From positions 62,001-126,000 of the IMG/VR virus record IMGVR_UViG_3300042289_000986: a DNA stretch of 64,000 bases. One strand, written 5' to 3'. A model generated the notes under the pieces. The model was given only the letters and a program-made list of their open reading frames with translations, did no database searches and was not told the origin of the DNA. Shown here in pieces: positions 6,356-40,786 of this stretch; position 1 is the stretch's first letter, and each line of letters starts with the position of its first letter. A program made the translations under genes and the position numbers.

Positions 6356-6670
6356 ATGAAAACAAAAGACCAAATGCTTTTAGAACAAGCTTATAATAAA
6401 ATTTTAAATGAAATAAGCGGTTTCGATGAAGATGATAGTGCTTCTGATGCACAACAAAACGCACCACAAGATTTAAAAGAAATCGAACAAGATTTGATGA
6501 GTGGTGAGTTTGGTGCTGCTTATGGAAAGTTAGAAAAACTTTTAAAATCATTGGAACCATTGGTTGGTGACATGTTCACTAAAGAAGAACCAAAAGGACC
6601 AAACTCTGAAGAATTCTTAAAACAAAGAATGAGTTTGAAGTTTGACGAAGAAGATAATCAAAACAACTAA
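6356..6670 (+). CDS. Acidic protein with KDQxLLExAY leader
   Basis: MKTKDQMLLEQAYNKILNE; TAAGTA 8 nt upstream. Confidence 0.65.
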   Translation: MKTKDQMLLEQAYNKILNEISGFDEDDSASDAQQNAPQDLKEIEQDLMSGEFGAAYGKLEKLLKSLEPLVGDMFTKEEPKGPNSEEFLKQRMSLKFDEEDNQNN

Positions 6671-6681
6671 GATTTTCTTTT

Positions 6682-7035
6682 ATGTCTGATCTTTCATTTA
6701 AAGATTATTTTCTTTTAAAGGAAGCTTTAGAATTTAAAAATGGTGGGTTTAGAATAACAGCCGATGATGGTGTTAATATAACTCTTGTTCAGCTTTTTAA
6801 AGATTTAAAAAATAACTGGAAAGAGCTTGCAAAATTTATTATACAAAATATAAAGTCTCATCATTTTAGTCCTTTAGTTATTATTATATCAATGGCGTTG
6901 GCTGGAATAAACACACAAGATTTTATCAATAAAAATCCTGAAGTTTTAAATTATGGAATAAGTCAAAAACTTATCGATAAAGTTGCCATTTTTTTAGATA
7001 AAAATCCCGAAGCTTTAAAATTATTTCAAAAATGA
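6682..7035 (+). CDS. Hypothetical protein
   Basis: ORF; leader SFKDYFLLKE resembles the T4 capsid-targeting sequence. Confidence 0.5.
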   Translation: MSDLSFKDYFLLKEALEFKNGGFRITADDGVNITLVQLFKDLKNNWKELAKFIIQNIKSHHFSPLVIIISMALAGINTQDFINKNPEVLNYGISQKLIDKVAIFLDKNPEALKLFQK

Positions 7036-7236
7036 AATCTTATAAGCAAGGTGTTGTAAACACAGACGATCATCCAATTTTAAGAAAAACTCAATTAGTG
7101 AGTATAATTTCCGAAGAAGATGATTTTTATATTGTTAAACCATTAATATCTTGTTTTGAACAAAAAATTTTAAAAAAAGATTTAATTGTTAATTGACATC
7201 AACCGATGTTTAAGGTAAGTTTATAGTATATTAAAT

Positions 7237-7307
7237 GCCTGGTTAGTTTAATGGTAAAACGGTTGATTTGTAATCATCTGACACCAGTTCGATTCTGGTA
7301 CTGGGCT
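7237..7307 (+). tRNA. tRNA-Thr(TGT)
   Basis: Acceptor GCCTGGT/ACTGGGC; anticodon loop TT-TGT-AA; TTCGATT T-loop. Confidence 0.9.
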
Positions 7308-7315
7308 TTTTAAAT

Positions 7316-7392
7316 TGCGGGATAGCAGTTCTGGTGAACTCAAGTGTCTCATAAGCACTTTTAGGTGGGTTCGATTCCCACTCCCGCTACCA
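7316..7392 (+). tRNA. tRNA-Met(CAT), initiator-like acceptor end
   Basis: Loop CT-CAT-AA; U1:U72 mismatch; encoded CCA. Confidence 0.88.
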
Positions 7393-7396
7393 ACTT

Positions 7397-7618
7397 ATGT
7401 ATGTACCATCTAAGCATTTTGAAAACCCTGAACAAGAAATAGTTTGTCTTTTAACAGGAGAATCTTATGTTTATTTAGAAGGCGATGATTTATCTCTAAT
7501 AGATCCAAAATATCATGAAGGATCTATAACAGAGCTACCAAAAAGATTTTTTCAACATCCTACTGGTATTTCAAAAGGAAATGGACAAGTTAGAATTTTA
7601 ATGCCCAAGATCCAATAA
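7397..7618 (+). CDS. Hypothetical protein
   Basis: ORF within tRNA region. Confidence 0.45.
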   Translation: MYVPSKHFENPEQEIVCLLTGESYVYLEGDDLSLIDPKYHEGSITELPKRFFQHPTGISKGNGQVRILMPKIQ

Positions 7619-7685
7619 TGTGACGAAATCTTAACTTGTTAGTTGGCACAAATGGTGCTAAATAAATGTGTGAAAGGAGGTATAC

Positions 7686-7847
7686 ATGGAAAAACATTAT
7701 CAAACACACCAATTGGGGATTGTTTTTGGTCCTTATGGTTCAGTTGGATATGTAGGAACAATACAGCGAGAAGATTTGAAAGAAATCGCTCAGATTTTTT
7801 TCGGATTGTTTCGTTGGGTTAAAACAACTTTAGCTTCATTGTTCTAA
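7686..7847 (+). CDS. 53-aa peptide with strong Shine-Dalgarno (not in ORF track)
   Basis: AAAGGAGGT-atac-ATG; MEKHYQTHQLGIVFGPYGSVGYVG...IFFGLFRWVKTTLASLF; followed by a terminator. Confidence 0.6.
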   Translation: MEKHYQTHQLGIVFGPYGSVGYVGTIQREDLKEIAQIFFGLFRWVKTTLASLF

Positions 7848-7857
7848 TCATAAACAC

Positions 7858-7885
7858 AACCCCTCTCGAAAGAGAGGGGTTTTTT
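7858..7885 (+). terminator. Intrinsic terminator
   Basis: AACCCCTCTC-GAAA-GAGAGGGGTT then T-run. Confidence 0.85.
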
Positions 7886-7921
7886 ATTTGACTTTTAAAA
7901 TATTTTTAGTATATTCTTATT

Positions 7922-8083
7922 ATGGACATCACATTTTTACTTCTTCGTTGGTTGGCAATTTTTACTGGATATTTTTTAATTGGATTAAGTATTGGTGCAG
8001 TATTATCTTTCATTTGGATTTCTTGGCGAGAAAAAAGAGCCAATAAACAATTCATGAAAGAAATTCTAAGTAAAAGAAAATAA
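7922..8083 (+). CDS. 53-aa single-TM membrane peptide (not in track)
   Basis: TTGACT..TATATT promoter ending 6 nt before ATG; hydrophobic N-half, basic tail. Confidence 0.55.
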   Translation: MDITFLLLRWLAIFTGYFLIGLSIGAVLSFIWISWREKRANKQFMKEILSKRK

Positions 8084-8090
8084 TTTTTAT

Positions 8091-8162
8091 GTCGCCATCG
8101 TCTAACGGTTAGGACACATGGTTTTCATCCATGTAATCGGAGTTCGATTCTCCGTGGCGATG
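8091..8162 (+). tRNA. tRNA-Glu(TTC)
   Basis: Anticodon arm CATGG-TT-TTC-AT-CCATG. Confidence 0.92.
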
Positions 8163-8167
8163 CTTTT

Positions 8168-8241
8168 GCGGAATTAGTTTAATGGTAAAACTGGACTCTT
8201 CCAAAGTCAGGACGAGGGTTCGATTCCCTCATTCCGCACCA
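8168..8241 (+). tRNA. tRNA-Gly(TCC)
   Basis: Acceptor GCGGAAT/ATTCCGC; loop CT-TCC-AA; CCA encoded. Confidence 0.92.
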
Positions 8242-8275
8242 CTTGACTTCTTTGTTTTGAAAATAAATTAATCAT

Positions 8276-8491
8276 ATGATTAATGCAGAAGTAAGAATAC
8301 CAAAACGAGGAGATGCAAAACTTAATTTAGATAGAGCACTTCAAAGACTAAAAACAAAATTAATGATCGAAGGAACTATGGATACTGTTCGATCAAAAAG
8401 AGCTTTTGAAACACCTAAAGAAAGAAGTGAAAGAAAACTTAAACAAAGATTAAAAATGATCAAGAAAAAATCTTTGACAAAAAGTAGATAA
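8276..8491 (+). CDS. rpsU: 30S ribosomal protein bS21
   Basis: V-x-I...LDRALQRLKTK..EG.M..VRSKRAFETPKERSERK pattern; 71 aa, basic. Confidence 0.88.
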   Translation: MINAEVRIPKRGDAKLNLDRALQRLKTKLMIEGTMDTVRSKRAFETPKERSERKLKQRLKMIKKKSLTKSR

Positions 8492-8509
8492 ACGTCTATA
8501 AATGATAAT

Positions 8510-9064
8510 GTGAAAACATTAATCATTCACCCAAAAGATACAAGTACTGTTTTTTTAGAACCAATCTACGAAAAGATTGATAACAAAACAGTTATCCAAA
8601 AAGATTGTTCCTTTGAACAACTTATTAATCTCATTGAAACACACGATAGAATTATGATGATGGGTCATGGTTCTCCTGATGGATTATTTTCTATTGGTAA
8701 TTTTGATGAGGGGTATGTTATTGATAAAAATATTGTGGATTTTTTAAAAAAGAAAAAAGAATGTTTTTATCTTTGGTGCAACGCTGATAAATTTGTTGAA
8801 AAATATCAATTGAATGGATTTTATTCAGGAATGTTTATTTCCGAAGTTAATGAGGCAAATTTTTGTAATGTGAATACCGATCAAAAATTGGTTAATGAAT
8901 CAAATTATTCTTTTTCTAAAATTGTTTCTAAATGGGCAAATTATGATATGAAAAACTTGTATGATAATGTAAAGATGGAATATAGCAAACTTGCAGAGTT
9001 TAATAATGTAGCTCTTTATAATTTAAAAAGACTTTATTATCAAACTAGCATAAATATTATTTGA
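8510..9064 (+). CDS. Hypothetical protein (caspase/CHAT-like GHG motif)
   Basis: IMMMGHGSPDG and LWC; TTGACA promoter upstream. Confidence 0.45.
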   Translation: MKTLIIHPKDTSTVFLEPIYEKIDNKTVIQKDCSFEQLINLIETHDRIMMMGHGSPDGLFSIGNFDEGYVIDKNIVDFLKKKKECFYLWCNADKFVEKYQLNGFYSGMFISEVNEANFCNVNTDQKLVNESNYSFSKIVSKWANYDMKNLYDNVKMEYSKLAEFNNVALYNLKRLYYQTSINII

Positions 9065-9097
9065 CAAAAGGAAAGATCTTTGATATGTTAGTAATAC

Positions 9098-9400
9098 GAT
9101 TTGGTGGCAGTTATAACCAAATCAGGATAAAAATTTTTGCTTGTTGGTGAGTTGGGGTTTTTATCTGAGCTAGGGGAGCCAAGCTGCGGTAAGCTATGAT
9201 CCTATGCATTTATACAATACAAGCTATGGACGAAGTTGTGTTCTGCGGATTGCGGAGCCTTCGTTGAGTAGTGGGACAAATTCTAGAATAAAACCCACTA
9301 AACACCAATTCGGGTTAATCTTGTAAGAGGAGCCGACTTTCCGTGGTTGTATAAACATGGCTGAGATTAGTCCTGAATCGTCGCGGGTAAACGATTCACA
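9098..9400 (+). ncRNA. Unassigned structured ncRNA (about 300 nt)
   Basis: Own promoter TTGACA(9061)-N17-TATGTT; GC-rich; no ORF; multiple nested helices. Confidence 0.7.
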
Positions 9401-9466
9401 TTTTCAGTAAATATTATTGTTATTTTTCTCGCGGAAACTTAGAGGTTTTTGCGAAAGGAGATAACA

Positions 9467-9571
9467 ATGACATTAATAATAGGAACAATAGTCTTAGCAT
9501 TTAACATTAAACTTGCATGTTTAGGTTATTTGGTAATGATTACAGAAATGTTTGGCAGACACACTCGATAA
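9467..9571 (+). CDS. 34-aa hydrophobic peptide with strong SD (not in track)
   Basis: AAAGGAG-ataaca-ATG; MTLIIGTIVLAFNIKLACLGYLVMITEMFGRHTR. Confidence 0.55.
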   Translation: MTLIIGTIVLAFNIKLACLGYLVMITEMFGRHTR

Positions 9572-9596
9572 TGAATGATTCTGACTAACGTTTTTG

Positions 9597-9630
9597 AAAC
9601 AAGGGTAGAGAAATCTACCCTTGTTTTTTT
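9597..9630 (+). terminator. Intrinsic terminator
   Basis: AAACAAGGGTAGA-GAAA-TCTACCCTTGTTT then T-run. Confidence 0.85.
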
Positions 9631-9657
9631 ATAACTTAATGATATATTGTTTACATG

Positions 9658-9744
9658 GGTGCGATGGCTGAGTGGTCTAAAGCAGGAGTTTACTAAACTC
9701 TCGAAGTTTAATCGCTTCCGTGGGTTCGAATCCTACTCGCACCG
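9658..9744 (+). tRNA. tRNA-Ser(ACT)
   Basis: Acceptor GGTGCGA/TCGCACC, G73, long variable arm, loop TT-ACT-AA. Confidence 0.88.
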
Positions 9745-9750
9745 TTTTTT

Positions 9751-10164
9751 ATGGAAATAACAGAATACGATCCGTTTAAAAAATCAATTGTTCCTTATGG
9801 CTTAGATAGGGGTGCTCCTAAATTTGATATAATTGAAACAAAAACTAAAAAAGATCAGCACTACAATCTTGCAGTGCAACAAGCACAAAAAGAATTTGAA
9901 AATCTTAAACAAATAGCTGATGTAATTAATAAACAAGCTCAACAAATAAAAGAGCGTTTAGAAATTACAGAACTTGTATATAACGCCGAACGTACCTTTA
10001 CCCCTGTTGTTGGAGCCAACTACTGGCTTATAAAAGATACAAAAAAAAATAATATAAAAATTGTTGTTTTGGGTCCGAAAGAATGGGCTACAAAACATCC
10101 AGAAAATTATGAATATATTTCAGAAGTTCAATTTTTAGCTAATGGACTTTGGGAAAAGTTGTGA
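9751..10164 (+). CDS. DUF2452-like protein
   Basis: PYG..RGAPKF, coiled coil, F.PVVG.NYWL, W at C-end. Confidence 0.6.
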   Translation: MEITEYDPFKKSIVPYGLDRGAPKFDIIETKTKKDQHYNLAVQQAQKEFENLKQIADVINKQAQQIKERLEITELVYNAERTFTPVVGANYWLIKDTKKNNIKIVVLGPKEWATKHPENYEYISEVQFLANGLWEKL

Positions 10165-10394
10165 TAATATATCAATATGAAAAAGTATGCTATACATATT
10201 AAATTCAAAGGACGTAATTTTAAATTAAACATTTTACCAAAAGATGATGATAGATTTGATTTGGAAATGGAATTTAAAGGTTCTCTATCTGGAGAAGATT
10301 TTCAAGATTTAAGAAAATATCTTGTTGATGAAGGATATGTAGATGCTGCCAGAAGTTGGATAGAAGGAGATAGTTATCTGGCAAATTAATTTTT

Positions 10395-10485
10395 GGGTAG
10401 ATGGCTGAGTTGGTCTAAGGCGTCCGACTTGAAATCGGAAGTGGGGGAAACTTCACCGTGGGTTCGAATCCTACTCTACCCGCCA
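10395..10485 (+). tRNA. tRNA-Ser(TGA)
   Basis: TCCGA-CT-TGA-AA-TCGGA; long V-arm; GCCA end. Confidence 0.93.
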
Positions 10486-10490
10486 TTTAA

Positions 10491-10564
10491 GGAGTCATAG
10501 CTCAATTGGTCAGAGCACCGCCCTGTCACGGCGGGGGTTGCGAGTTCGAGCCTCGTTGACTCCG
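10491..10564 (+). tRNA. tRNA-Asp(GTC)
   Basis: CCGCC-CT-GTC-AC-GGCGG. Confidence 0.93.
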
Positions 10565-10787
10565 TTTTTGAATAAGTATAACATATGTTTGAAAGCGGAA
10601 ACTCATTTGAAGATAAAACATCTGATGCTTTTATAAATGAAGCAATAAAAGAAACGTTAGATAATTTAAAAATTAACCCACCAAAATTCCAAGCGGTTTT
10701 TGATGACGGTTCAACTGTAGATTTTGAAATTTACGAAGAAGCTATGGGTTTTTTACATAAAAACCCAAACTGTAAAGTATTTGTAAA

Positions 10788-11219
10788 ATGAAATTTAAAA
10801 TTTATTTTGAATCAAAAAATTTTAATTTAAATGTTTATTATAAACTTTTAAATAATTTTTTGAATTCACAAAAAAACTGGAACTTAAAAAAAATTGAAAA
10901 TGATCCATATAACCAAATGGAAATTGTTGATGAGAATGGAAAAAGGTATGGGAAAATTGAAAGAGATTATGATCCTGAAACAAAAACATTATATTTAAAT
11001 CATATCGGTGTGGGGTTTGATGAAAACGGTCAAAGAATGAAAGGTTTGGGGTTGGTTGATTTAATTTATAATTTTGAAAAACAAATCGTGCAAATGTATG
11101 GAATTGAAAACGTTTGCACAGAACCAGTAAATGATATTACAGATAAAAAATTCAAAGAAATATACCAAGATTACAAAATAGAGCAAAAAGACAATTATAT
11201 TTGCGCCTCGATTAAATAA
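10788..11219 (+). CDS. Possible GNAT-fold protein
   Basis: LYLNHIGV..QRMKGLGL resembles acetyl-CoA motif A; leader MKFKIYFES. Confidence 0.4.
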   Translation: MKFKIYFESKNFNLNVYYKLLNNFLNSQKNWNLKKIENDPYNQMEIVDENGKRYGKIERDYDPETKTLYLNHIGVGFDENGQRMKGLGLVDLIYNFEKQIVQMYGIENVCTEPVNDITDKKFKEIYQDYKIEQKDNYICASIK

Positions 11220-11228
11220 GTATAAGAT

Positions 11229-11957
11229 ATGAGAAAAGATGATATTAGCATTAACGAAGCTTACTTAAAAGTTTATCAAAATTTAGAAGAAGGCATGTTT
11301 GATGTCGCTAAAGCCAAAATTGGTGGTGCAATTAAAGGTATTGCGCCTGGTAAAAGATTAGGCGCAATGGCAGCAAAAGGATTAGGAAAAGCTGCTGGTA
11401 TGCTGAGTCCAACAGCAGGAAAAATGTTACAACAAACAGGTGAGCGTTTACAAAAATCTGCATCAGAAGCTGGTATGGCTGGTAAAATAAACTCAATCAT
11501 GAAATCTCATACAGGCAGCATTCAAAAGATTGCTCAAGAAGTCATTAATGATTTAAACAAATTAGATTTAAATCCTGAAAATCTTACAGCCGAACAATTT
11601 GCTTCCCAAATAACACAAGATTTCACATCTTATTTAAGCTCACAGCTTCCAGAATCGCAAGTTGATGTTTCTGGTATTGGAATTGGATCAACAGTTAAAG
11701 ATAAAGAAGGAAACGCTTATCGTTATACTTCTCCTTCAGAAGTTGATCCAGCAACAGGCAAACTTAAACCAGCAACTGATAGTGCCAACAAAGAAGGTGC
11801 TAAATGGTATGAACTGAGTGGTGGTGGCAAATCAGCATATGAGATTGCTGGGGACAGCGATGAAATGCAAAAGAAAATTTCTATTGCTTTCAAAAAACAA
11901 GGCCAATCTCAGCCAGAAACACCAGAAGAAGAAAAACCAAAAATGCCCGAATTTTAA
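11229..11957 (+). CDS. Putative head-internal protein with KDxxxxxEAY leader
   Basis: MRKDDISINEAYLKVYQNLEE-G; Gly/Ala/Lys-rich helix; TAAGTA 6 nt upstream. Confidence 0.6.
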   Translation: MRKDDISINEAYLKVYQNLEEGMFDVAKAKIGGAIKGIAPGKRLGAMAAKGLGKAAGMLSPTAGKMLQQTGERLQKSASEAGMAGKINSIMKSHTGSIQKIAQEVINDLNKLDLNPENLTAEQFASQITQDFTSYLSSQLPESQVDVSGIGIGSTVKDKEGNAYRYTSPSEVDPATGKLKPATDSANKEGAKWYELSGGGKSAYEIAGDSDEMQKKISIAFKKQGQSQPETPEEEKPKMPEF

Positions 11958-11999
11958 TTTATCTTGCTTTCTTTGATTTTTCTAGTAAGATAATAATAT

Positions 12000-12076
12000 C
12001 GGGATGTGGCTCAATTTGGTAGAGCATCTGCTTTGGGAGCAGAGGGTTGCAGGTTCAAATCCTGTCATCCCGACCA
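12000..12076 (+). tRNA. tRNA-Pro(TGG)
   Basis: CGGGATG/CATCCCG; loop TT-TGG-GA; ACCA. Confidence 0.94.
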
Positions 12077-12170
12077 TTTATTCTTGACAATATTTTGTTT
12101 TTATAATATTGTCTATGGATGAAAAATGAAGTTATTTATGATTTAAGAACTTAAAAATGTAACAAAATCT

Positions 12171-12821
12171 ATGTTAATAAAACATTACATCAAAGAAATA
12201 AACTCTGATATTTTTGCGGTTGTTATTAAAAACAAATATGATCGTGCCATGCTTTTTTGTCGCGCCCAAGAATATTATGAAAGTCCAAGTCCTAAGTTTC
12301 GTGGAAAACAATTTTCTATTTGGGACTATATGAAATGGTATGATGAACAACATGGAAGAGGATTTAGTTATGCAAATGATTGGTCTGGTTTCAACATTCC
12401 TTTGAGACAAATAAACGATTGTTATAACAAATTAAACAAGATAGAGTCTCCTTATGATAAACTAATGTATGATATTTTGGCTGTTTTGAATTTAAAATAT
12501 CTTGCGACAAATGAATCATACGTGATTGGTTGTGGTGACACAAAAGGTGATATCTTTAAACATGAAGTCTGTCATGGTCTTTATTACACCAATAAAGAAT
12601 ACAAAAAGAAAATGGATGCTTTGACTAAAGGACTTCCAAAAAAATATTACGAAGCATTCAAAAAAAATATTTTAAAAATGGGATATGCCGCAAAAGTCGT
12701 TGATGATGAGATACAAGCATATCTTCAATATGGATATGAAAATGAAGATTTTGGAAAAGGGGTTGACATTAGTGTTCGTATCGAATATAGTAGTCTTTAT
12801 AAACAACAATCAAAATTATGA
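12171..12821 (+). CDS. Hypothetical protein with HExxH (zincin-like) motif
   Basis: FKHEVCHGLY; downstream DEIQAY. Confidence 0.5.
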   Translation: MLIKHYIKEINSDIFAVVIKNKYDRAMLFCRAQEYYESPSPKFRGKQFSIWDYMKWYDEQHGRGFSYANDWSGFNIPLRQINDCYNKLNKIESPYDKLMYDILAVLNLKYLATNESYVIGCGDTKGDIFKHEVCHGLYYTNKEYKKKMDALTKGLPKKYYEAFKKNILKMGYAAKVVDDEIQAYLQYGYENEDFGKGVDISVRIEYSSLYKQQSKL

Positions 12822-15823: not shown

Positions 15824-15828
15824 ATTGA

Positions 15829-16203: not shown

Positions 16204-16246
16204 CTGATTAAATATATCTGGTAAATTAGATATAGTTCTTTGAAAA
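16200..16246 (+). promoter_or_regulatory. Sigma70-like promoter followed by boxA-like element
   Basis: TTGACT-N16-TAAATT then GTTCTTTGAAAA (16235-16246). Confidence 0.6.
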
Positions 16247-16257
16247 ATTTAAAAAAG

Positions 16258-17666: not shown

Positions 17667-17918
17667 TTATTTTTGATTACAACTATCTAAAAGTTCTTTA
17701 TAAACTCTGTTTATATTTTCCATAGCTTGACAGAGCATAGATATGGAACTTGGATGATTAATAGCATTAGAATATTCTTTTATTTCTTCAGCATTTGCTG
17801 AAATGGTCATTCTTAATCTAATTTCTTTAGGTGATATAGAATTTTTTTTATTTGAGTCGCAACAAGAAGCAACTGTTTCATATAATTTTTCTAAACTGGT
17901 TTGGTCTTTTTTCGCCAT
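17667..17918 (-). CDS. Small protein with KDQ leader
   Basis: MAKKDQTSLEKLYE; TAAATA 5 nt upstream. Confidence 0.55.
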   Translation of the reverse strand: MAKKDQTSLEKLYETVASCCDSNKKNSISPKEIRLRMTISANAEEIKEYSNAINHPSSISMLCQAMENINRVYKELLDSCNQK

Positions 17919-17926
17919 AATAATAT

Positions 17927-18493
17927 TTATACAATTAAATCACTAACAATCAAAATTAGAGTTTTTGCTCTTGTTTCAAATTCTTCATCAGCACAAGGAG
18001 TTTCCAGTGTGCAATATGGAATGTTTCTTCTTCTCAATGCACGTTCTAAAGTTCCCTTATATGGTTGCTGACCATTTGAAATAACACCTTGATCTGTAAC
18101 ATCCCCATGTGCTTTTACTGCCAGTTGGATTTTACTTTTCATTAAAGCACCTTTTACCTTGTCTTCAATTTCTGGAGAACAATAAGCATAAACTCCATCT
18201 ACTTCATCATCTTCGTGTAAAGAAATAACAAGTGTTGGATTCAGTTCTTCAATTTTAGAAAGAAGTCTGTCTTGTAAATCGTTTTGATCATCAGTGTCAA
18301 AATGACGATTGGGATCTTTTCCATTCAATCTTCTTTTCTTAGTTTTATTTAAATTAGAATAAACCTTGACGTTTGGGAGATTTTTAAAATAGTTTGCAGC
18401 AATATTTCCAGCAGGTTCATCACCATGCAAACCACTAACAATCACAAAAACGTTTGGGTTTAAAAGATTTTCTACTAATGCGTCAAATTTCAC
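17927..18493 (-). CDS. M14-family Zn carboxypeptidase/deacylase (AstE/MpaA-like); start reassigned to GTG 18493
   Basis: GLHGDEPAG, DPNRHF, ISLHED, TLE; TAAGTA 5 nt before GTG. Confidence 0.8.
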   Translation of the reverse strand: MKFDALVENLLNPNVFVIVSGLHGDEPAGNIAANYFKNLPNVKVYSNLNKTKKRRLNGKDPNRHFDTDDQNDLQDRLLSKIEELNPTLVISLHEDDEVDGVYAYCSPEIEDKVKGALMKSKIQLAVKAHGDVTDQGVISNGQQPYKGTLERALRRRNIPYCTLETPCADEEFETRAKTLILIVSDLIV

Positions 18494-19704: not shown

Positions 19705-20196
19705 TTAATCTTCAAAAAAACTTCCGTGCATATCCCATGCTATTTTGTCTAGTGCTGTTGAATCCATTTTTATAAAACTAGTGTTTTTTAACAAATCAAC
19801 TAAAAGCTTTTGAATTAACTCAAACTCATTGTCTAAATTTTCATAGGGAGATAATGAATATTTTTTAGAGTAATATTCTAAGACATTAGGATTTTTAAAT
19901 GCTCTATCAATAAATTTATCTAAAAGTTTTTTTGCAATTACATCCAGATTATCGCCTTCTTCGGTAAGAAAATTTTGATATCCGAACATAACAGATGGAT
20001 TTAAAACGGCTTCGTTAGAATCGTTTTCTTCCTCACGATCATCTTGCTGTGTATATAAGTTCGACTTATCGAGTTTATCTAAATTTCCTGCCGACATTTT
20101 CATATCCGAATCGGGTAATTCTTCGTTTGTATTAACAACTTCTTTTAAAACTTTTTGATAAGCATCTTCTAATAAAATTTGATCTTTGCTTTTCAT
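19705..20196 (-). CDS. Acidic protein with KDQxLLExAY leader
   Basis: MKSKDQILLEDAYQKVLKE; TAAATA upstream. Confidence 0.65.
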   Translation of the reverse strand: MKSKDQILLEDAYQKVLKEVVNTNEELPDSDMKMSAGNLDKLDKSNLYTQQDDREEENDSNEAVLNPSVMFGYQNFLTEEGDNLDVIAKKLLDKFIDRAFKNPNVLEYYSKKYSLSPYENLDNEFELIQKLLVDLLKNTSFIKMDSTALDKIAWDMHGSFFED

Positions 20197-20231
20197 TATG
20201 ATATATTTACTCCAAATTTAATCAATTTAAT

Positions 20232-20444
20232 ATGATAAATATGAATATAGTGAACGTGGCAGATACTTCTTTATATAAAGAATTCTTAGCAATGAGAGAA
20301 GAAGTCATGAAACACAAGTGGTATGAATCCGAAAAAGCTGGATATGATATCGGCTTCGCAAGAGCAGTGATTGATTGGACAATGAGGTTTAAAACTCAGT
20401 GGATTAAAAATAGAAAAAAAAAAATTAAGATTCTTTGTATCTAG
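20232..20444 (+). CDS. DUF4032-like small protein
   Basis: SLYKEFLAMREEVMKHKWYESEKAGYDIGF..AVIDW. Confidence 0.7.
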   Translation: MINMNIVNVADTSLYKEFLAMREEVMKHKWYESEKAGYDIGFARAVIDWTMRFKTQWIKNRKKKIKILCI

Positions 20445-20700
20445 GTGAATGGGAAAGATCAATTATAATTTCTCGCATTTTATCAAATTTTTGATATAAT
20501 GGCTTGAGATCTTCAGAAGTAAAAGCATCTTTTAAGTTTTGATCGTTTAAAAGAGACTCTACTGTATTTAAAGCTTTAAAAAAAGCTTCTTTAGCAAGTC
20601 TTTTTGATCTAGCTTTTCTTAAAAAATAATCGGAACTATATTCTTTTAATATTTCATTTTCATATGCTTCGGATAACATATTTAAATCTTTTCTATTCAT
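20425..20700 (-). CDS. Small protein with KDxxxLxEAY leader
   Basis: MNRKDLNMLSEAYENEILKE; TAAATA upstream. Confidence 0.55.
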   Translation of the reverse strand: MNRKDLNMLSEAYENEILKEYSSDYFLRKARSKRLAKEAFFKALNTVESLLNDQNLKDAFTSEDLKPLYQKFDKMREIIIDLSHSPRYKES

Positions 20701-20759
20701 TATTTAATATTTACAAAAAATACTTGTATCTTTTTAAAAATATGCCATAATTATATTCT

Positions 20760-32625: not shown

Positions 32626-32831
32626 ACCATCGGAATTAGAAGATGCTGTATATTACTCTGATTTTAGTGGAAAAATATTAAACGAACAACCTCCGATAGA
32701 GATTAATATTGACTTTAATTATGGGTCAAAGTATGATGGATGTAAGTTAGAATTACATTTGGATGATGAAGATTTTGACCAGCTTTTAAGCTTTTTAAAA
32801 ACCAAATTATCTGAAAATTTTAAACATAATT

Positions 32832-33419: not shown

Positions 33420-33823
33420 GATCATCTTGGCCAAAACATGCAATGGAACTTGCAAAGGTTGCTATGCTCAGATCCGAAGATCCCCATAAAAAAGTGGGTG
33501 CTTGTGTTCTGGGACATAACAACGAAGTTTTAGCTGTTGCTTATAATGGTTTAGCCAGTGGTGTAAACGTTCACAATAGCTTTTGGAAAGATAGAGACGA
33601 GCGTAGACCTTATATGATTCATGCTGAAACAAATTGTTTGGCAAGAATTCGTCAAGGCGAAGGGAAGTTAATAGCTTGTACTTTGCTACCTTGTTCCAAT
33701 TGCGCTATTAACATTGTGGCTCATGGAATTAAAGAAGTGTTCTTTAATGAAATGTACAGCAGAGATTACAAGGCTGTGGAAATTTTTAGTTTTTATGGCG
33801 TTAAGTGCCATCAACTTGATTAA
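33416..33823 (+). CDS. dCMP deaminase
   Basis: RSED..KVGA, YNG, HAE, PCSNC. Confidence 0.9.
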   Translation: MRSSWPKHAMELAKVAMLRSEDPHKKVGACVLGHNNEVLAVAYNGLASGVNVHNSFWKDRDERRPYMIHAETNCLARIRQGEGKLIACTLLPCSNCAINIVAHGIKEVFFNEMYSRDYKAVEIFSFYGVKCHQLD

Positions 33824-34719
33824 AGTTCGTATGCCTCTTTTGCCAATCTATAATCGATTGGTTCAGCCATAGAATATTCTTTGACTGCTTTCTCTATACT
33901 TTCTTTGACAGTTAGAAGTCCTAATCCAATACTTTCAATTTTATCCGTATTTAAAATACAATTACTTCTACCAACTTTAAATTTGGCATCAGGAATAGAA
34001 ACAAAATTCCACTTTGGATTTTCGAATCCATAAGACTTTAAAATTTCAACAACTTCTTTGGCTTCAATACTACCTTTATTGGTAACATTATAAACTCCTA
34101 AAGGTCTATTTTTTTCAATGAACTTGTAAACAAAATTTACAAGATCATCAACATTAGTAATAGAATTTTGTTGGCTGATTAAATTGTCATAATTTAATAA
34201 TTTCCAAAGATAATTTTTAGATTCAGGAACGCCATTAAACGGTATACGAATTCTGAAAATATATCTTTCCAAATGTTCGCTCAACTTTTCAAAAGCATCT
34301 TTTGTTTTTGAATAAAAAGAACTTTGATTACTATCTGCTCCAAAATTTGGGAGATCGTCTTCTGTGTATTGTTGTGAATACCCATCATAAATACAACCAG
34401 ATCCAATATGAATAATTGGAATTCTGAGACGGTTGGCGACTTTAGTGATATATAAAGGTACTGTTACGTTATAATGGTAACAATTTTCTTTATCGGTTTC
34501 ACATGCTTCAACATTGGGTCTACCAGTATAACCAGAACAATTTATAATCCAATCAAAATTTGCTTTTGGATAGTCTGATTCTCTATGTAAAAATTTTACA
34601 AATGTATCAGGATCTTCATAATTCAAATCAGATTTACTAATATGAACTATGTTATGTTTTTCATTAGCTTTTGCTAAATAATTTCCAATATATCCCTTTC
34701 CAAGTATTAATACTTTCAT
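33820..34719 (-). CDS. RmlD-like NDP-sugar epimerase/reductase; start reassigned to 34719
   Basis: MKVLILGKGYIG, GYTGRPNVEACE, SGCIYDG, FYSKTK. Confidence 0.85.
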   Translation of the reverse strand: MKVLILGKGYIGNYLAKANEKHNIVHISKSDLNYEDPDTFVKFLHRESDYPKANFDWIINCSGYTGRPNVEACETDKENCYHYNVTVPLYITKVANRLRIPIIHIGSGCIYDGYSQQYTEDDLPNFGADSNQSSFYSKTKDAFEKLSEHLERYIFRIRIPFNGVPESKNYLWKLLNYDNLISQQNSITNVDDLVNFVYKFIEKNRPLGVYNVTNKGSIEAKEVVEILKSYGFENPKWNFVSIPDAKFKVGRSNCILNTDKIESIGLGLLTVKESIEKAVKEYSMAEPIDYRLAKEAYEL

Positions 34720-34720
34720 A

Positions 34721-36700
34721 TTATTTGATTGGACATGCACCGCCTTCACATTCCAAACCTTGAATAGCATCTTCTCCCATATCAGAAGATTTCATTGTTT
34801 GAATTGGTTTAACTTTAGCTTTATTTTTTTCGTATGTTTCACCATTAATTTCTTCGTATGGTGCTTGTTTGAATCCGTGATTTTGTCTCAACAAAAAGCT
34901 TACAGATTTAATTGAATTTTGATAATTTTCTTCTAACCATTTTTTAAGCTCTGGAAGTTCTTCTTCCGAGTAATATGCGGTAACACTAACTGCATTATCT
35001 GACCAAATAGTTTGAAGTTTTTTAACTGTTTCCAGTTGTTTGATAACTCCCATATCTGCTGCAAAAATTGCACCATCTGGTGTTTCGCACGGAAACTCAA
35101 TAACAACGGTATCATGATTTTCTGAGCCATCAAAATTGATGACATATTCGGTATGATATCCCATATCTCTGCAATATTGAACTAATGGATCATTACTTGC
35201 CATACGAACACGACGAGTATAATATTTTGAATAAGCGGGGTGGATTCCTGGTGTAGCACCACCAAGAAGACTTAATGTTCCACTAGGCTTAATTGTTGTA
35301 AGTTTAATACTACGAGGCCATCCTTTTTGTTTACTCCACTCTTTATCAAATTTTCTCAATTCTTTATAACAATCGTCAAGCCAATCGACTTTATCTAATG
35401 CTTGACAAACACCAGTTACTCCCAAACCAAGACGCATGTTCTTGTGAACAATTTTATTTGTTTCATCGTGAATGAATGGAAGTGCAGCGATTGCTTTTTG
35501 TGTTTTATAAAGCAATCTGGCACAATCAACCAATTCTTCTTTGTTTGAAATATTATTCAAATAAAGTTCTGAGAGATTGCAACACTCATAAGAGGCAAGA
35601 CTAATTTCACCACATGGGTTTGTACCAACTACATTGTCTTCATCGGTTGGATAAAGACTAGAATCCTTCATTGGACCATCTTTAATTCTTCCATATTTTT
35701 GAGAAAGAGGAAGGTTAAAGAAACCATAAGGTTCGCCTTTTGCAAAACCAGTTTCTTTATCTGTTGTATAACCATTTTGCCAGATCTCGTTTGAGATGTG
35801 GGAAAAGTCATCAGCATAAATCGTGTTGTTAGACATTGCTCTCCAGTTAGGAATATTTCCCAATGACCAATTTTTGGCGCGTAAAAAGAGATAATCATCA
35901 GGATCTCCTATAGCAATTTGGGCAGAGCGACGAACATTACCAGAAACAACAATACTTCCAATAATATTACAAATATCTAATACATCGATAGAACGAAGCT
36001 TTTTGCCTTCTCTTGTTTGAAAGATTTTTGCAATTTTGTCAATACCTTCGATTAATATTCCTGCTCCGCTTGCTTGTCCACCGAAACCTTGAATCTTTTC
36101 ACCTGCACCACGAATAAGGATTGTAGAATAATTAAAAGATTTTCCTGTTACATAAAATGCATGAAGAACTCGATCTAAAAGTTCGATCCAGCCTTCACGA
36201 CTATCTGGAATAATAAACTTTGCATCTTTTGTACATTCATGTGTAATCGTTACACCTTTTTTAATTTTAGGAAGTTCGTGAATATCTTCTCTACGAATAG
36301 AAAATCCGACACCACCACCAAGCATTAAATTTTCAAATAAAAACAAAAATGCTTTTGGTTCATTCATAGACACATTCCAACAATTCAATAAAGAATTTGC
36401 TCCAAAACGCTCAACTGTGTTTGTTCCTAATTGCCAAAGCATTCTTCCTGCATAGTTGCAACGCAAGTTGAAAATATGATCAAACAGTCTTTCGGCTTCT
36501 TCTTGTGTATAATCTGCACCTAGTTTTTGTGCTCCGTTGATACAACGTTGAATTGTTTCATGCCACTCTTCTTTTTGTCCATCGTCTTTTAAACGAGCAT
36601 ATGTTCTTTTATAAACAATATAACCAAGTCCATTGAAACCCCAATTAGTTTTTTTGTTAGAATATTTTTTAACAAACGAATCCGAAATAATTTTTTCCAT
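34721..36700 (-). CDS. nrdJ: Class II (adenosylcobalamin) ribonucleotide reductase
   Basis: KRTYAR, NC, GGGVG, NVRRSA, TNPCGE, TIKPSGT, C-terminal CEGGACP. Confidence 0.93.
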   Translation of the reverse strand: MEKIISDSFVKKYSNKKTNWGFNGLGYIVYKRTYARLKDDGQKEEWHETIQRCINGAQKLGADYTQEEAERLFDHIFNLRCNYAGRMLWQLGTNTVERFGANSLLNCWNVSMNEPKAFLFLFENLMLGGGVGFSIRREDIHELPKIKKGVTITHECTKDAKFIIPDSREGWIELLDRVLHAFYVTGKSFNYSTILIRGAGEKIQGFGGQASGAGILIEGIDKIAKIFQTREGKKLRSIDVLDICNIIGSIVVSGNVRRSAQIAIGDPDDYLFLRAKNWSLGNIPNWRAMSNNTIYADDFSHISNEIWQNGYTTDKETGFAKGEPYGFFNLPLSQKYGRIKDGPMKDSSLYPTDEDNVVGTNPCGEISLASYECCNLSELYLNNISNKEELVDCARLLYKTQKAIAALPFIHDETNKIVHKNMRLGLGVTGVCQALDKVDWLDDCYKELRKFDKEWSKQKGWPRSIKLTTIKPSGTLSLLGGATPGIHPAYSKYYTRRVRMASNDPLVQYCRDMGYHTEYVINFDGSENHDTVVIEFPCETPDGAIFAADMGVIKQLETVKKLQTIWSDNAVSVTAYYSEEELPELKKWLEENYQNSIKSVSFLLRQNHGFKQAPYEEINGETYEKNKAKVKPIQTMKSSDMGEDAIQGLECEGGACPIK

Positions 36701-36736
36701 ATTTTTAATTAGATAATTTTTACAATAATCAATATA

Positions 36737-37114
36737 TCATTTTTTAATCTTTTTGTAAATTTTTTTCTTTTTCTTTTTTCGTTTTGCAAGTTTTTTTAAC
36801 TCTCCTTGATATATTTTGATAGCTAAATATTTTAAAAATTTTGTTATATCTAAAACAGACAAAGTATTCATTAATCTAGATTCAGTATATAAAACTTGGG
36901 TTTCGCACCAATCTGGATACAAATAATGAACACATTCATGATAAGCAGTTGATATTAAATTTGTTCTTGGATCTATTTCAATATCTGTCCAATTACAAGA
37001 ACCATCAAACCCTCTCATTTTTTTAAAAATAAAAAAAGTTGGAGGTTTTCTTCTGATCAAATTTAAACATCTATTATGAATTTGAGTCAATTGTCTTTTG
37101 GTCAGCTTTTTCAT
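36737..37114 (-). CDS. Small basic HExxH protein
   Basis: AYHECVH. Confidence 0.5.
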   Translation of the reverse strand: MKKLTKRQLTQIHNRCLNLIRRKPPTFFIFKKMRGFDGSCNWTDIEIDPRTNLISTAYHECVHYLYPDWCETQVLYTESRLMNTLSVLDITKFLKYLAIKIYQGELKKLAKRKKKKKKIYKKIKK

Positions 37115-37322
37115 CTTTATACTTATCGCTATGGATTTGGACGATTTTCGTATGTGGGTTAATGGCTATATTCAATATTACTAAAAAAATATAAGTTGCG
37201 AGCCAATTATTAAATGTGTATAACATGTTCATATTGAACAGTGTATTTAAACTCCACATAAACAAAATAGGCCCAAAAATCAAATATACTAAGATTAATA
37301 GTAACGCAAAAATATATTTCAT
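37074..37322 (-). CDS. Two-TM membrane protein
   Basis: GP...WSLNTLF..Y.F.NWLA. Confidence 0.55.
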   Translation of the reverse strand: MKYIFALLLILVYLIFGPILFMWSLNTLFNMNMLYTFNNWLATYIFLVILNIAINPHTKIVQIHSDKYKDEKADQKTIDSNS

Positions 37323-37400
37323 GAGTTGAATTATGAGCTTTTTTGAGGGAAAGTCAATTTATTTGTTTGCTTTTATCTTCAAAACTGCTAAACTACTTGC

Positions 37401-38597
37401 ATGATTTCTTTAAAAGTAAAAAGTGTCTTTTCAATACCCAAAGATAAAGAATTTTATAAACCTGAAATGGGTAACGAGTTTCCCCTTAAAACATTTATTA
37501 CAAATCATTATGGTTATGCTCCTTGTTTTTATAATCTCGAAACTGTTTTTAGTTCTGGTGTGTTAGATTATTTGTTTGAGCATGGTCAACTTATTAATTT
37601 TTACAATACAGGCAAATTAGAAAGCATCTTAGTTGGAGAAATCGAAAAAACACACGGAGGGTTTTTTCTTTTTAAATACAAAGACATTTTTGTTAAATTA
37701 AATATTAAAAATTTCAACAGTGAATTTTTTGACGATGATTTAGAATTTCTTTCACGCATTCAAATTAAAGATAAAAAGAAAGACACTAAAACTTTTACAC
37801 TATCTATTATAGGACCAGCAAACTTGAAAGAATACCCACTAAAAGATTTTGCTCAGTTTGCTCTTAACGATGCTCAAGAAGTTAAAGTTCACTTGTTTAT
37901 CAAAAATCAATATGGTGACTACAACTTTGAACCTATTGCGATTAATCTTCCAGATAATCTTGATCTAGAATCAAACTATGGAAAAAATTTTATTGATGTT
38001 GACAAAAAAATCAAAGAAAGATTGGAAGAAAAACCCAACGGTTTATTCATGTTTCATGGTTTGCCAGGTACCGGAAAAACAACTTATATCAAATATTTGG
38101 CAGGGCAAGTTAAAAGAGACTTTATTTATATCCCAACAACAATGATCGAATATTTTACTTCCGATCCTAATTGTTTACACACTCTCATCCAAAAACCAAA
38201 TTCTGTTATTATTTTGGAAGATGCAGAAAAAGCAATTTTAAAAAGACTTGGAGATGGCATGGATTCATCAGCAGTATCTTCACTTTTAAATCTTTCAGAT
38301 GGAATTTTAAGCGATATTCTTAAAACATCTGTTATTGTAACTTATAATTGTCCAAAACAAGATGTTGATGATGCATTGAAAAGAAAAGGAAGATTACAAA
38401 TGGATTATGAATTTACAGCATTGAGTGAAGAAGATGCAAAAAAATTAGCAAAAAAATTAAAATATTCTAAAAAGACTATTGATGAAAAAATTAATAAACC
38501 AATGACATTAAGCGAAATTTATAATATTGAAAAAGAAACTGAATTTTATGGAGATACCAAAAAAGAAAATCAAAAACAAATTGGATTTGGGGTTTGA
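37401..38597 (+). CDS. AAA+ ATPase
   Basis: GLPGTGKT, IILEDAE, LLNLSDG, ALKRKGR, terminal IGF. Confidence 0.9.
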   Translation: MISLKVKSVFSIPKDKEFYKPEMGNEFPLKTFITNHYGYAPCFYNLETVFSSGVLDYLFEHGQLINFYNTGKLESILVGEIEKTHGGFFLFKYKDIFVKLNIKNFNSEFFDDDLEFLSRIQIKDKKKDTKTFTLSIIGPANLKEYPLKDFAQFALNDAQEVKVHLFIKNQYGDYNFEPIAINLPDNLDLESNYGKNFIDVDKKIKERLEEKPNGLFMFHGLPGTGKTTYIKYLAGQVKRDFIYIPTTMIEYFTSDPNCLHTLIQKPNSVIILEDAEKAILKRLGDGMDSSAVSSLLNLSDGILSDILKTSVIVTYNCPKQDVDDALKRKGRLQMDYEFTALSEEDAKKLAKKLKYSKKTIDEKINKPMTLSEIYNIEKETEFYGDTKKENQKQIGFGV

Positions 38598-39390
38598 CGA
38601 TTTAATTTTATTGGAAGAATCTTTTTCTCATATAAAGTTCTTTGATAAAAATCACACTTATACAATTAATAATAAACCAGCAAAAGAATCTGTTTCTGGT
38701 TTATTGAAAAATTTTGAAAAACCTTTTGAATCTGAAAAAATTGCAGGTTTTGTTGCGACAAGAGATCAAAAATCAGTAGAACAAGTTTTATCTGAATGGG
38801 AATTTGCAAAAAATTATTCATGTCATAAGGGATCAGAATTTCATTTATTTGTTGAAAATTATTTTAATAGAAAACAAATCACGATAGATTCAAAATCTTT
38901 AAAATTATTTTTTGATTCTAATCAAAGTTTTTATGATAACCAATCAACCGAAAAATACTATAAAGAGTTAGCACATTTAATAAAAAATTTTTTAAATTTT
39001 TATGATTGGTGGAAAAAAGATCATGTATTAATTAAATCTGAGTTTGTTGTTGGTGATGAAGAAAATGGTATTTGCGGAACTATCGACAACCTTTCTTATA
39101 ATAAGAAAACAAAAGAATTAGTTATTTTTGATTATAAAACTAATAAAGAAATTAAAAAAAGAAATCCAAGAGATGAAACATTTTTAAAACCAATCCAATA
39201 TTTGTCTCATTGTGAATACATAAAATACAGCCTTCAATTAAATTTATATCAATATATAATTGAAAAAAATTCACCATTCAAAGTTCCAAAGTCATATATT
39301 GTTTGGGTGGCTGATAAAGAAAACTATGAATTGATGCAAACGTTACAACTTCAAAAAGAAGCAAAAATGTTAATAGAATACTATAAATAG
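38527..39390 (+). CDS. PD-(D/E)xK exonuclease (Cas4/RecB-like); exact start uncertain
   Basis: GSEFH, SE, GTID, IFDYKT, QLNLY. Confidence 0.85.
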   Translation: MKKKLNFMEIPKKKIKNKLDLGFDDLILLEESFSHIKFFDKNHTYTINNKPAKESVSGLLKNFEKPFESEKIAGFVATRDQKSVEQVLSEWEFAKNYSCHKGSEFHLFVENYFNRKQITIDSKSLKLFFDSNQSFYDNQSTEKYYKELAHLIKNFLNFYDWWKKDHVLIKSEFVVGDEENGICGTIDNLSYNKKTKELVIFDYKTNKEIKKRNPRDETFLKPIQYLSHCEYIKYSLQLNLYQYIIEKNSPFKVPKSYIVWVADKENYELMQTLQLQKEAKMLIEYYK

Positions 39391-39395
39391 TATTA

Positions 39396-39902
39396 ATGAG
39401 ATCAAAAGACCAAATTTTACTAGAAAATGCATATTCAAGCATTTTATCAAAAGACAACGATATTGAAATGGGTATGCCAGAAGAAAACCCTGAAGCTCCT
39501 TTTTCGTGTGATCATTTAGCAGAAAGAGAAGAAGAGGCTATGGCAAAATCTAATCTTTATGCTATCTGTAAACACGCAAAATCTCTTTTAGACTCATTGG
39601 AGTCTGGCGCACATTTAGAACCTTGGCAATTAGAAAAAATTGCAATTGTAAATGATAACATTCAAAGTGTTTCTCAAGTAGCAGAGTATGAAGCTGGTGC
39701 TCAATCTGAAGAATTTGATATCAATGATATTGATAGTATGGATAAACCAGAAAGTATCCAAAGAGAATCAAAAGAAACTAAAGAAAAGGGAAATCCTTGG
39801 GCAATATGTAACAAATCAACAGGTGGTAAAAAAGAAAACCCAGAAAAATTTGAAAAATGTGTCAAAGGGGTAAAGAAAAAAACTGGTTATAAAAAGAAAT
39901 AA
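39396..39902 (+). CDS. Protein with KDQxLLExAY leader and basic Cys tail
   Basis: MRSKDQILLENAY; LEPWQLEKI; NPWAIC..KFEKCVKGVKK. Confidence 0.65.
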   Translation: MRSKDQILLENAYSSILSKDNDIEMGMPEENPEAPFSCDHLAEREEEAMAKSNLYAICKHAKSLLDSLESGAHLEPWQLEKIAIVNDNIQSVSQVAEYEAGAQSEEFDINDIDSMDKPESIQRESKETKEKGNPWAICNKSTGGKKENPEKFEKCVKGVKKKTGYKKK

Positions 39903-39946
39903 TTTTATAGAAATGGGAACAAACCAAGATAAATAATATTACAACT

Positions 39947-40786
39947 ATGAATGATCCATTAGCAAACGCATACTTAAAAATCCTTGAGGAAGGTGTTCCT
40001 TCAAGCGAAGTAAAAGGTACAACAACTAAACCAAGCGATGCTCCTTACGGAGACAAGAAAAATAATCTTGTTAAAAAAGTTTCGCCAAAATCAGCAACCG
40101 AAAATGCTGACAGTGAAATGGATGATGTTGAAGAAGCTCCAGCCGAATTAACATCAAATGGATCAGACGGAGAAGCTAAAAAATTAGGAGAAGCATCCAA
40201 TCCTTTTGATGCTCTCTTTAATAAAATTTTAGAAGAAGAAGAAGCATTCAATTTCTCAACTGAAGACAATTCTTTGGAACCAGATTCATCATTTGATATG
40301 AATACAAATGATGATGGTCTTGATGAATTTGATGATGAAACAGAAGAAACAGAAGGCGAAGAAGTAACACTCACACTAAGTCGTGAATTAGCTGAAAAAC
40401 TTCACGAAGCTTTGATGGGAGTTCTCGAAAATTCCGAAGAAGAATCAGAAGATTTGGGTGAAGAAGGTGAAGAAGGTGAAGAAGGTGAAGAAGGTGAAGA
40501 AATCGAAGAAACTGAAGAAGTTAAAGAAGAAGCAGTAGATGCTGAAGTCGTAGGACATGCTTTAGTTGATTCTGAAAAACTCAATAAAGGTTTGAACAGT
40601 CATTCAAACAAAGTTGTAAAGGGAGCAGTTCCTGTTACAAGTAAATCAGCCGAAACACCACAAACAGGAAAAGGTTGTGATGGAGAATTAAAATCACATT
40701 CAACAGAACCAGCAGTAAAAAAACTTCAAAGTAAAAAAGATAATGTTGGTGGAGTAACTGTTGGAAAAACATTGTTTGACAATTAA
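39947..40786 (+). CDS. Highly acidic low-complexity protein (scaffold/core-like)
   Basis: Glu-rich, repeated KILEE, GEE repeats; late-type promoter and terminator. Confidence 0.55.
   Translation: MNDPLANAYLKILEEGVPSSEVKGTTTKPSDAPYGDKKNNLVKKVSPKSATENADSEMDDVEEAPAELTSNGSDGEAKKLGEASNPFDALFNKILEEEEAFNFSTEDNSLEPDSSFDMNTNDDGLDEFDDETEETEGEEVTLTLSRELAEKLHEALMGVLENSEEESEDLGEEGEEGEEGEEGEEIEETEEVKEEAVDAEVVGHALVDSEKLNKGLNSHSNKVVKGAVPVTSKSAETPQTGKGCDGELKSHSTEPAVKKLQSKKDNVGGVTVGKTLFDN
40457..40501 (+). repeat. Perfect tandem repeat (GGTGAAGAA)x5 encoding (GEE)5
   Basis: Read directly. Confidence 0.9.

Follow-up and report, generated by a model that had tools for sequence, protein, structure and literature searches.

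A stretch of 64,000 nucleotides from the IMG/VR virus record IMGVR_UViG_3300042289_000986 (positions 62,001 to 126,000; hereafter the window, whose coordinates are used throughout) contains seven late-type open reading frames (ORFs) whose products open with a common N-terminal leader and continue into dissimilar sequences, here termed cargos. Judging from sequence comparison, this leader is probably a lineage-specific capsid-targeting propeptide carried by polymorphic internal head proteins and processed by an S77 prohead protease, that is, a counterpart of the capsid-targeting sequence (CTS) of phage T4. The type of system, a capsid-targeting sequence with its internal proteins, is known already; on this reading the window phage adds a lineage to it in which the tag is new and longer and the repertoire larger.

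The leader follows the consensus M-[KR]-[SNTK]-K-D-Q-I-L-L-E-[EQND]-A-Y-x-K-[IV]-L-x-E, and some genes carry a partial version of it. An earlier note on this stretch had described unrelated cargos behind one leader, similarity that ends after about 20 residues, a TAA(A/G)TA box just upstream of each gene and several genes inserted against the local gene direction, and this description is upheld by our analysis. The coordinates and N-termini of the seven ORFs were confirmed (Table 1), similarity among their products stops at about residue 20, and three of the seven (17667-17918, 19705-20196 and 20425-20700) lie on the minus strand amid mostly plus-strand genes and tRNA genes. Membership was graded by the score against a leader profile, by which the 6356, 19705 and 39396 genes are canonical (44-47 bits, first leader profile). 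The cargo of the divergent 11229 gene has homologues that bear good leaders, for example in L028 with MKNKDDIGLFEAYNQV, and the 39947 gene has the second half of the leader alone (...AYLKILEE). An eighth leader gene (MRNKDAMLLETCYNKVKGLVKE, 156 residues) was located 3.4 kb to the left of the window, and no further one was found, profile search included, in the approximately 70 kb read to its right.

Table 1. Leader genes, their upstream boxes and other features of the phage (aa, amino acids; pI, isoelectric point; bits, score against the leader profile).
Feature	Position	Strand	Details
Leader gene, 104 aa	6356..6670	+	MKTKDQMLLEQAYNKILNE and acidic cargo, pI 4.2; 46.5 bits
Divergent leader gene, 242 aa	11229..11957	+	MRKDDISINEAYLKVYQNLEE and Gly/Ala/Lys-rich cargo; weak profile match, 8.5 bits
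Weak or probable member, 83 aa	17667..17918	-	MAKKDQTSLEKLYE...; 4.8 bits only
Leader gene, 163 aa	19705..20196	-	Leader, acidic linker (about residues 24-81) and helical C-domain; 44.4 bits
Leader gene, 91 aa	20425..20700	-	Variant leader MNRKDLNMLSEAYENEILKE and basic cargo, pI 9.3; clear match, 22.9 bits
Leader gene, 168 aa	39396..39902	+	MRSKDQILLENAYSSILSK and cargo with terminal NPWA and Lys-rich tail; 46.8 bits
Half-leader gene, 279 aa	39947..40786	+	MNDPLANAYLKILEE and very acidic Glu-rich cargo; 17.3 bits
Box ATAAGTA	6341..6347	+	8 nucleotides before ATG of 6356 gene
Box ATAAGTA	11216..11222	+	6 nucleotides before ATG of 11229 gene
Box ATAAATA	17924..17930	-	5 nucleotides before ATG of 17667-17918 gene
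Box GTAAATA	20204..20210	-	7 nucleotides before ATG of 19705-20196 gene
Box GTAAATA	20708..20714	-	7 nucleotides before ATG of 20425-20700 gene
Box ATAAATA	39383..39389	+	6 nucleotides before ATG of 39396 gene
Box ATAAATA	39929..39935	+	11 nucleotides before ATG of 39947 gene
Intrinsic-terminator-like hairpin	40808..40833	+	11 bp, 6 GC, and T run; closes the 39947-40786 unit
Tail sheath gene	44799-47288		Within the window
S77 (gp21-type) prohead protease gene, 223 aa	L283:1448-2119	-	PF03420 Peptidase_S77

The leader is found almost exclusively at the very start of these proteins. The expression KD.{2,4}L..[AL]Y matches the six-frame translation of the window five times, in all cases at residue 4 of an ORF, and KDQxLLExAY, searched as a DNA pattern, occurs three times in the window against 0.00 expected from 100 dinucleotide shuffles. 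A profile built from leader matches was searched against the six-frame translation of 272 fetched loci (2.9 million residues) and gave 119 matches of at least 10 bits, with Met at profile column 1 in 117 of them, as expected from the claim of the earlier note that the motif belongs to N-termini. The back-translated leader pattern matches 54 IMG/VR stretches and has no match in 596 Gb of bacterial and archaeal sequence (185,579 genomes). The regular-expression positions, the shuffles, the Met-anchored profile matches and this cellular-genome null rule out chance or an ORF-calling artefact as the origin of the leader. No match was obtained in cultured phages by tblastn of the 22-residue leader, nor was the leader sequence matched in the published literature. 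After profile iteration, the window and related contigs together provided 83 distinct leader proteins of 67 to 405 residues, and when dissimilar proteins were scanned without bias for N-termini in common, the leader family came out as the largest group. Separately, the loci L059-L096 encode, with several ORFs per locus, proteins of 73-651 residues which share an N-terminal module (...ECIGDSL.TIN.NF..L) and have diverse C-termini; these are possibly tail fibres.

The cargos are diverse. When the 83 leader proteins were clustered by BLASTP (1e-4) on the sequence beyond residue 22, they fell into 54 cargo clusters, several cargo families being conserved across diverged phages. A Pfam and PHROGs scan of 71 leader proteins detected one NUDIX domain and one DUF5661, and no convincing domain in the remaining ones. 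The NUDIX cargo, the only clearly enzymatic one found, belongs to a 405-residue leader protein (L136:5421-6635, minus strand) that ends in a complete NUDIX hydrolase domain (Pfam, 6.4e-19). Isoelectric points are widely spread, many cargos being strongly acidic or basic. In relatives, up to five leader genes with different cargos stand in tandem arrays, and in L038, L048 and L049 the neighbours of the array are a tRNA gene and a gene homologous to window gene 16971.

The organization of the 163-residue protein (19705) and its homologues gives a closer view of how such proteins are built. Its AlphaFold model, which has low confidence (predicted local distance difference test of 58) and was used for secondary structure only, places a helix at residues 4-21, a low-confidence segment at 24-81 and a helical C-domain after it. 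A homologue search with this protein gave seven matches from 50 candidates, leader-only relatives not being retrieved, and the cargo homologues are mosaics: P0002, P0003 and P0008 combine the leader and the C-domain without the acidic linker, P0004, P0005 and P0007 join leader and linker to three different C-termini, and P0005 fuses a variant leader of the 20425 type to a linker of the 19705 type. In P0002 and P0003 the first leader half, KDQILLExAY, is joined directly to the cargo, and with the second half standing by itself in 39947 it is clear that either half can occur alone. The 39396 protein and the products of related genes on other contigs have the same NPWA and Lys-rich tail but differing middles. 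As judged from these predicted proteins, leader, linker and cargo modules are reshuffled at the protein level.

The earlier note had further proposed that the leader travels as a mobile promoter-plus-leader DNA cassette, and this part of its interpretation finds no support in the DNA, although module exchange is seen at the protein level. Among the window paralogues nucleotide identity is 33% upstream and 59% within the leader, the longest shared run is 13 nucleotides, and the upstream regions have nothing in common except the box. Nucleotide identity between paralogous leaders is 59-72%, and their codons vary, Leu being written as TTA, CTT, CTA, TTG or CTC and Ser as AGC or TCA. This synonymous variation, together with the divergence of the leader DNA and an upstream likeness limited to the box, indicates that selection acts on the peptide and not on a DNA cassette or an RNA element. 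Another gp21 lineage has a second leader type (M..D...IFE.Y...L.EA) on proteins of 336-406 residues encoded beside gp21; these genes (L119, L205, L113 and others) lie just upstream of gp21 in divergent orientation on contigs of about 236-243 kb. The presence of a related but distinct leader there suggests that leader variants follow phage lineages.

All seven window leader genes carry the box NTAA[AG]TA, ending 5-11 nucleotides before the ATG, and none has a Shine-Dalgarno sequence upstream. The same box was found at 27 of the 100 genes called in the window, namely the seven leader genes and 20 others, among them the structural genes for sheath and tube, 47892, 50466, 52571 and the terminase; outside the window it precedes the portal, gp13 and gp21 genes. 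The capsid gene, in contrast with box genes such as those following 39383-39395 and 47310-47322 or those on L283, has GGAG and no box. The box is present at 64 of the 83 leader genes overall, with a modal spacing to the ATG of 5-6 nucleotides, and in tandem arrays it is clear at the first gene only. It resembles the T4 late promoter, TATAAATA; no gp55 homologue was located. The short spacing and the lack of a Shine-Dalgarno sequence imply that the late mRNAs would be leaderless or nearly so, transcription beginning at the AUG itself or beside it. In two of three freshwater metatranscriptomes there are contigs that cross 39947-40786, starting at 39953 or 39956 and ending at 40780 or 40793, shortly before the strong terminator-like hairpin at 40808-40833, and this is the sole gene between 38.6 and 42.0 kb that such contigs cover almost end to end; being assemblies of RNA libraries that possibly contain DNA, they are weak evidence. 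The GAA/Glu-rich repeat of this gene (approximately 40459-40493) also attracts unrelated contigs.

A capsid-targeting propeptide calls for a prohead protease. Walking rightwards through contigs with identical proteins, we reached the head module of the window phage outside the window, at a window coordinate of about 123-131 kb, or some 59-66 kb beyond its right end. It comprises Portal_T4, gp13, a TnsA-like gene, Peptidase_S77, a 69-residue gp67-like protein, a 298-residue scaffold and Gp23, the Pfam matches on L283 including PF07068 (Gp23) and PF07230 (portal). The protease, whose motif reads EEMVKEVNRY and not DEMVKEVNRY, is thus present in the same genome as the leader genes. The position of this module appears to differ from that in relatives: the first window ORF (1-1523) is the 3' part of a gene for 580 residues starting 219 nucleotides left of the window, and in relatives the homologues of this gene follow the capsid gene at a distance of a few kb, which indicates that the head module of the window phage has moved relative to theirs.

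With the T4 head proteins of NC_000866 as queries, homologues of gp21 and gp23 were located beside leader genes in related contigs. The order in L006 is a 106-residue protein (MLKDQKLIAEAY...), the gp21-type protease, a 178-residue protein (MKKKDQILLEEAY...), a coiled-coil scaffold and the capsid protein. In 18 related loci a leader gene starts at most 60 nucleotides downstream of the gp21-type protease gene, and a further one, for the MLKDQKLIAEAY... protein, lies just upstream of the protease gene. The post-protease genes represent eight cargo clusters unrelated to one another, and they differ in this way even among loci with near-identical proteases. A further gene of the window, at 44445-44720 on the minus strand, encodes a 91-residue protein (MNKFDLLVSTILTES...). 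It belongs to a family (MNFNNTVLEILEEAK..., in many cases bearing an RCTKVTK motif) that almost every relative has near its head module and that combines a conserved N-terminus with a variable tail; this protein, too, may be internal to the head and have an L-x-E motif of its own.

The leader also shares the register of the T4 CTS. A [LIVMF]-x-E motif, which would be a cleavage site, ends at residue 10 (Glu10) in 71 of 80 leaders, and a second such putative site ends at residues 18-20 in 52 of 80. The protease of the window phage has L-V-E at residues 8-10 of its own N-terminus and the scaffold has I-L-E at 6-8. The corresponding T4 N-termini are MKTYQEFIAE|A for internal proteins IPII and IPIII, MKTFKEF... 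for IPI and MLKEQLIAEA for gp22, so that FIAE|A in T4 and ILLE|x here both place a hydrophobic pair before a Glu at residue 10. In the T4 CTS, residues 4 and 7 serve targeting and residues 8 and 10 serve processing (PMC9026906), and several cleavage sites per propeptide are known for proteases of this kind (PMC5694885).

The likeness to T4 extends further. There, IPI, IPII, IPIII and Alt carry the CTS as a short N-terminal propeptide on unrelated small late proteins (Mullaney and Black, 1996; PMC3012670, PMC9026906), as the leader proteins do here, and both genomes encode a gp21-type S77 protease. The T4 genes ipI, ipII and ipIII sit around the tRNA cluster, and the window leader genes are likewise mixed with tRNA genes; in both cases the genes are scattered and form a repertoire that is hypervariable between related phages. 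In the window, 14 tRNA genes form four small groups on the plus strand between 7237 and 22242, with five leader genes interleaved. Differences are equally evident: the leader has another consensus, is longer and consists of two parts, KDQILLE and AYxK[IV]LxE, both of which contain an LxE; the repertoire exceeds that of T4, with at least eight genes in the window phage genome and arrays of five in relatives; and the T4 CTS has been worked out experimentally, whereas the leader family is known from metagenome sequences alone. The interpretation of the earlier note is upheld in part. Its core, a T4-like capsid-targeting leader on unrelated cargos, agrees with the comparative context, namely the T4 affinity of the phage, the S77 protease, scaffold and Gp23, the 18 protease-adjacent loci, the confinement of the leader to the N-terminus, the Glu10 register and the box of the structural genes. 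Sequence homology to the T4 CTS was not seen, the leader profile scoring below 3 bits at best on the T4 internal-protein and gp22 N-termini or head loci. Because the profile is blind to the T4 sequences, the likeness we claim is one of function, register and context and not of homology.

Two other comparisons place the leader among known sorting and maturation signals. Extracellular contractile injection systems, with their N-terminal signals, and encapsulins, with their cargo-loading peptides, also sort diverse cargos into a phage-derived container by means of a portable peptide; they differ in the compartment, which is a tail tube or else a shell of the HK97 fold whose peptide is C-terminal, in having no maturation protease and in being unrelated in sequence. 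In the giant phages phiKZ, 201phi2-1 and SPN3US, N-terminal propeptides of head proteins are removed after Glu by a related prohead protease, hold several sites as the leader does and include the paralogues gp53 and gp54 of SPN3US with identical N-termini; in contrast to the leader, they mostly exceed 100 residues, have an A/S/G-x-E motif and include no short leader common to dozens of cargos (PMC5694885).

An alternative that we regard as unlikely, and yet as the best of those considered, is that the tagged proteins enter the prohead as assembly or filler parts only and not as effectors for delivery. They would be accessories of the scaffold core or would balance charge, as T4 gp67, gp68 and the internal peptides do, and would then be degraded or kept in the head, with cargo diversity as a sign of weak constraint. 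Many cargos are of low complexity and strongly acidic or basic, as in 39947-40786, residues 24-81 of the 163-residue protein are modelled with low confidence, almost no cargo has a recognisable domain, and the leader genes of relatives beside gp21 occupy the slots held in T4 by gp67 and gp68. The core and scaffold proteins gp22, gp67 and gp68 also resemble the family in an N-terminal LxE (seen in gp22 and in the MLKDQKLIAEAY protein of a relative) and in their place beside gp21. However, these three are conserved core components, whereas here near-identical phages fill the slot after gp21 with eight cargos that are unrelated, and the majority of leader genes are distant from the head module. 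The complete NUDIX hydrolase, the cargo families kept across diverged phages, the compact helical domains that are present in some cargos and reused in mosaics, and the T4 precedent that CTS proteins can be effectors (IPI* against GmrSD) all argue against a mere filler.

Several observations speak against a capsid-targeting role as such. The head module of the window phage contains no leader gene, and the slot beside the protease is variable, a recognisable leader gene being adjacent in only 13 of 88 L006-type loci. The scores below 3 bits on T4 sequences belong here too, as does the conservation of Ala12, Tyr13 and [IV]16-L17 past Glu10, which would be odd if the cut at Glu10 alone mattered. 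The consensus does not score significantly as an amphipathic helix (hydrophobic moment, muH, of 0.32 vs 0.24 +/- 0.12 for shuffled sequences). Lastly, in two relatives the leader is followed by a hydrophobic stretch in the cargo, one of which ends in Cys (GGAAC) and recalls a lipoprotein signal, so that some cargos may be bound for a different place.

Some of these points would suit a leader that acts as a docking helix for another common partner. This could be a chaperone, a host factor, the membrane, or the lumen of the tail or its baseplate, in the manner of the N-terminal signals that load contractile injection systems. The leader genes of the window phage are 80-120 kb from its head module and so lack a direct link to the head, and both the hydrophobic stretches, one with its lipoprotein-like Cys end, and the undetectable homology to the T4 CTS would be accommodated. 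We nevertheless consider this explanation improbable, given that in relatives the leader genes are placed between the prohead protease, which they follow immediately, and the genes for scaffold and capsid, and not among tail genes, that L-L-E at residues 8-10 suits the known site type of the protease, and that the N-termini of protease and scaffold have such motifs of their own. Finally, that the conserved ORF start is an RNA-level translation signal, a 'downstream box' of leaderless late mRNAs, would fit transcripts beginning at or beside the AUG and the metatranscriptome contigs that start 6-9 nucleotides inside the 39947 ORF, but we rejected it as highly improbable since conservation is at the amino-acid level, with synonymous changes and varied Leu and Ser codons in the leaders, and structural late genes have the same box without the leader.

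The remaining gene content is in agreement with the assignment of the window phage to an uncultured freshwater clade of distant T4-superfamily myoviruses, a phage also represented by an IMG/VR contig of 211.6 kb. The window has a G+C content of about 31% and encodes, besides the sheath, a gp19 tube protein, two T4_baseplate proteins, a gp5-like lysozyme/OB protein and a T4-type large terminase (TerL) whose best cultured match is phiM9 (38.7%), as well as a ribonucleotide reductase and an RNA ligase. No close DNA relative was detected among cultured phages by megablast or blastn. A phage-encoded transfer-messenger RNA (tmRNA) occupies 3194-3653 on the minus strand (Rfam RF00023, 138 bits, full length), with the ARAGORN tag peptide ADEEMLLAA. 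The 155-residue ORF at 6093-6560 (minus strand), which overlaps the leader gene 6356-6670 and the gene 6072-6335, is probably spurious. To the right of the window, at L279:2697-9999 (a window coordinate of about 82-89 kb), methyltransferases, an NAD-dependent epimerase and DUF5672 form a cluster between recombination genes, and glycosyltransferase genes follow further on (L280:344-1018 and L282:10205-11296); jointly these genes may act in modifying the DNA or the virion with sugars. Putative mobile endonucleases include the TnsA-like gene between gp13 and the prohead protease (L283:2152-2613, minus strand), an HNH/NUMOD4 gene left of the window (L276:9347-10000) and a SegE-like GIY-YIG gene (L280:7477-7917).

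If the leader is a capsid-targeting propeptide, its first 13-20 residues, probably helical, would dock each protein onto the scaffolding core during prohead assembly, and the S77 protease would then cut after the Glu of [LIVMF]-x-E, at Glu10 and/or at Glu18-20, and free the cargo inside the head. At least some cargos would be ejected together with the DNA and become active soon after entry into the next cell. New tagged proteins would originate from tandem duplication and from recombination whose breakpoints fall at the leader or immediately behind it. A bolder version, possible though doubtful at present, sees in the leader a portable packaging tag by which a clade of environmental T4-like phages reshuffles an arsenal of injected effectors, with modules recombining like those of polymorphic toxin systems; every tagged protein, the packaged NUDIX hydrolase included, would then be a virion-delivered counter-defence or host-takeover factor of the first minutes of infection.

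Experimental work on capsid-targeting sequences and hypervariable internal proteins has so far been limited to T4 and its close relatives. The family described here would extend the same logic to an uncultured freshwater clade, in which the tag is another one and better conserved, the unrelated cargos number dozens and modules are clearly shuffled. If the proposed role holds true, the tag would be a sequence handle with which virion-packaged proteins, prime candidates for injected anti-defence factors, could be listed from metagenomes, and those who wish to fill T4-type heads with foreign proteins would have a second targeting peptide of natural origin.

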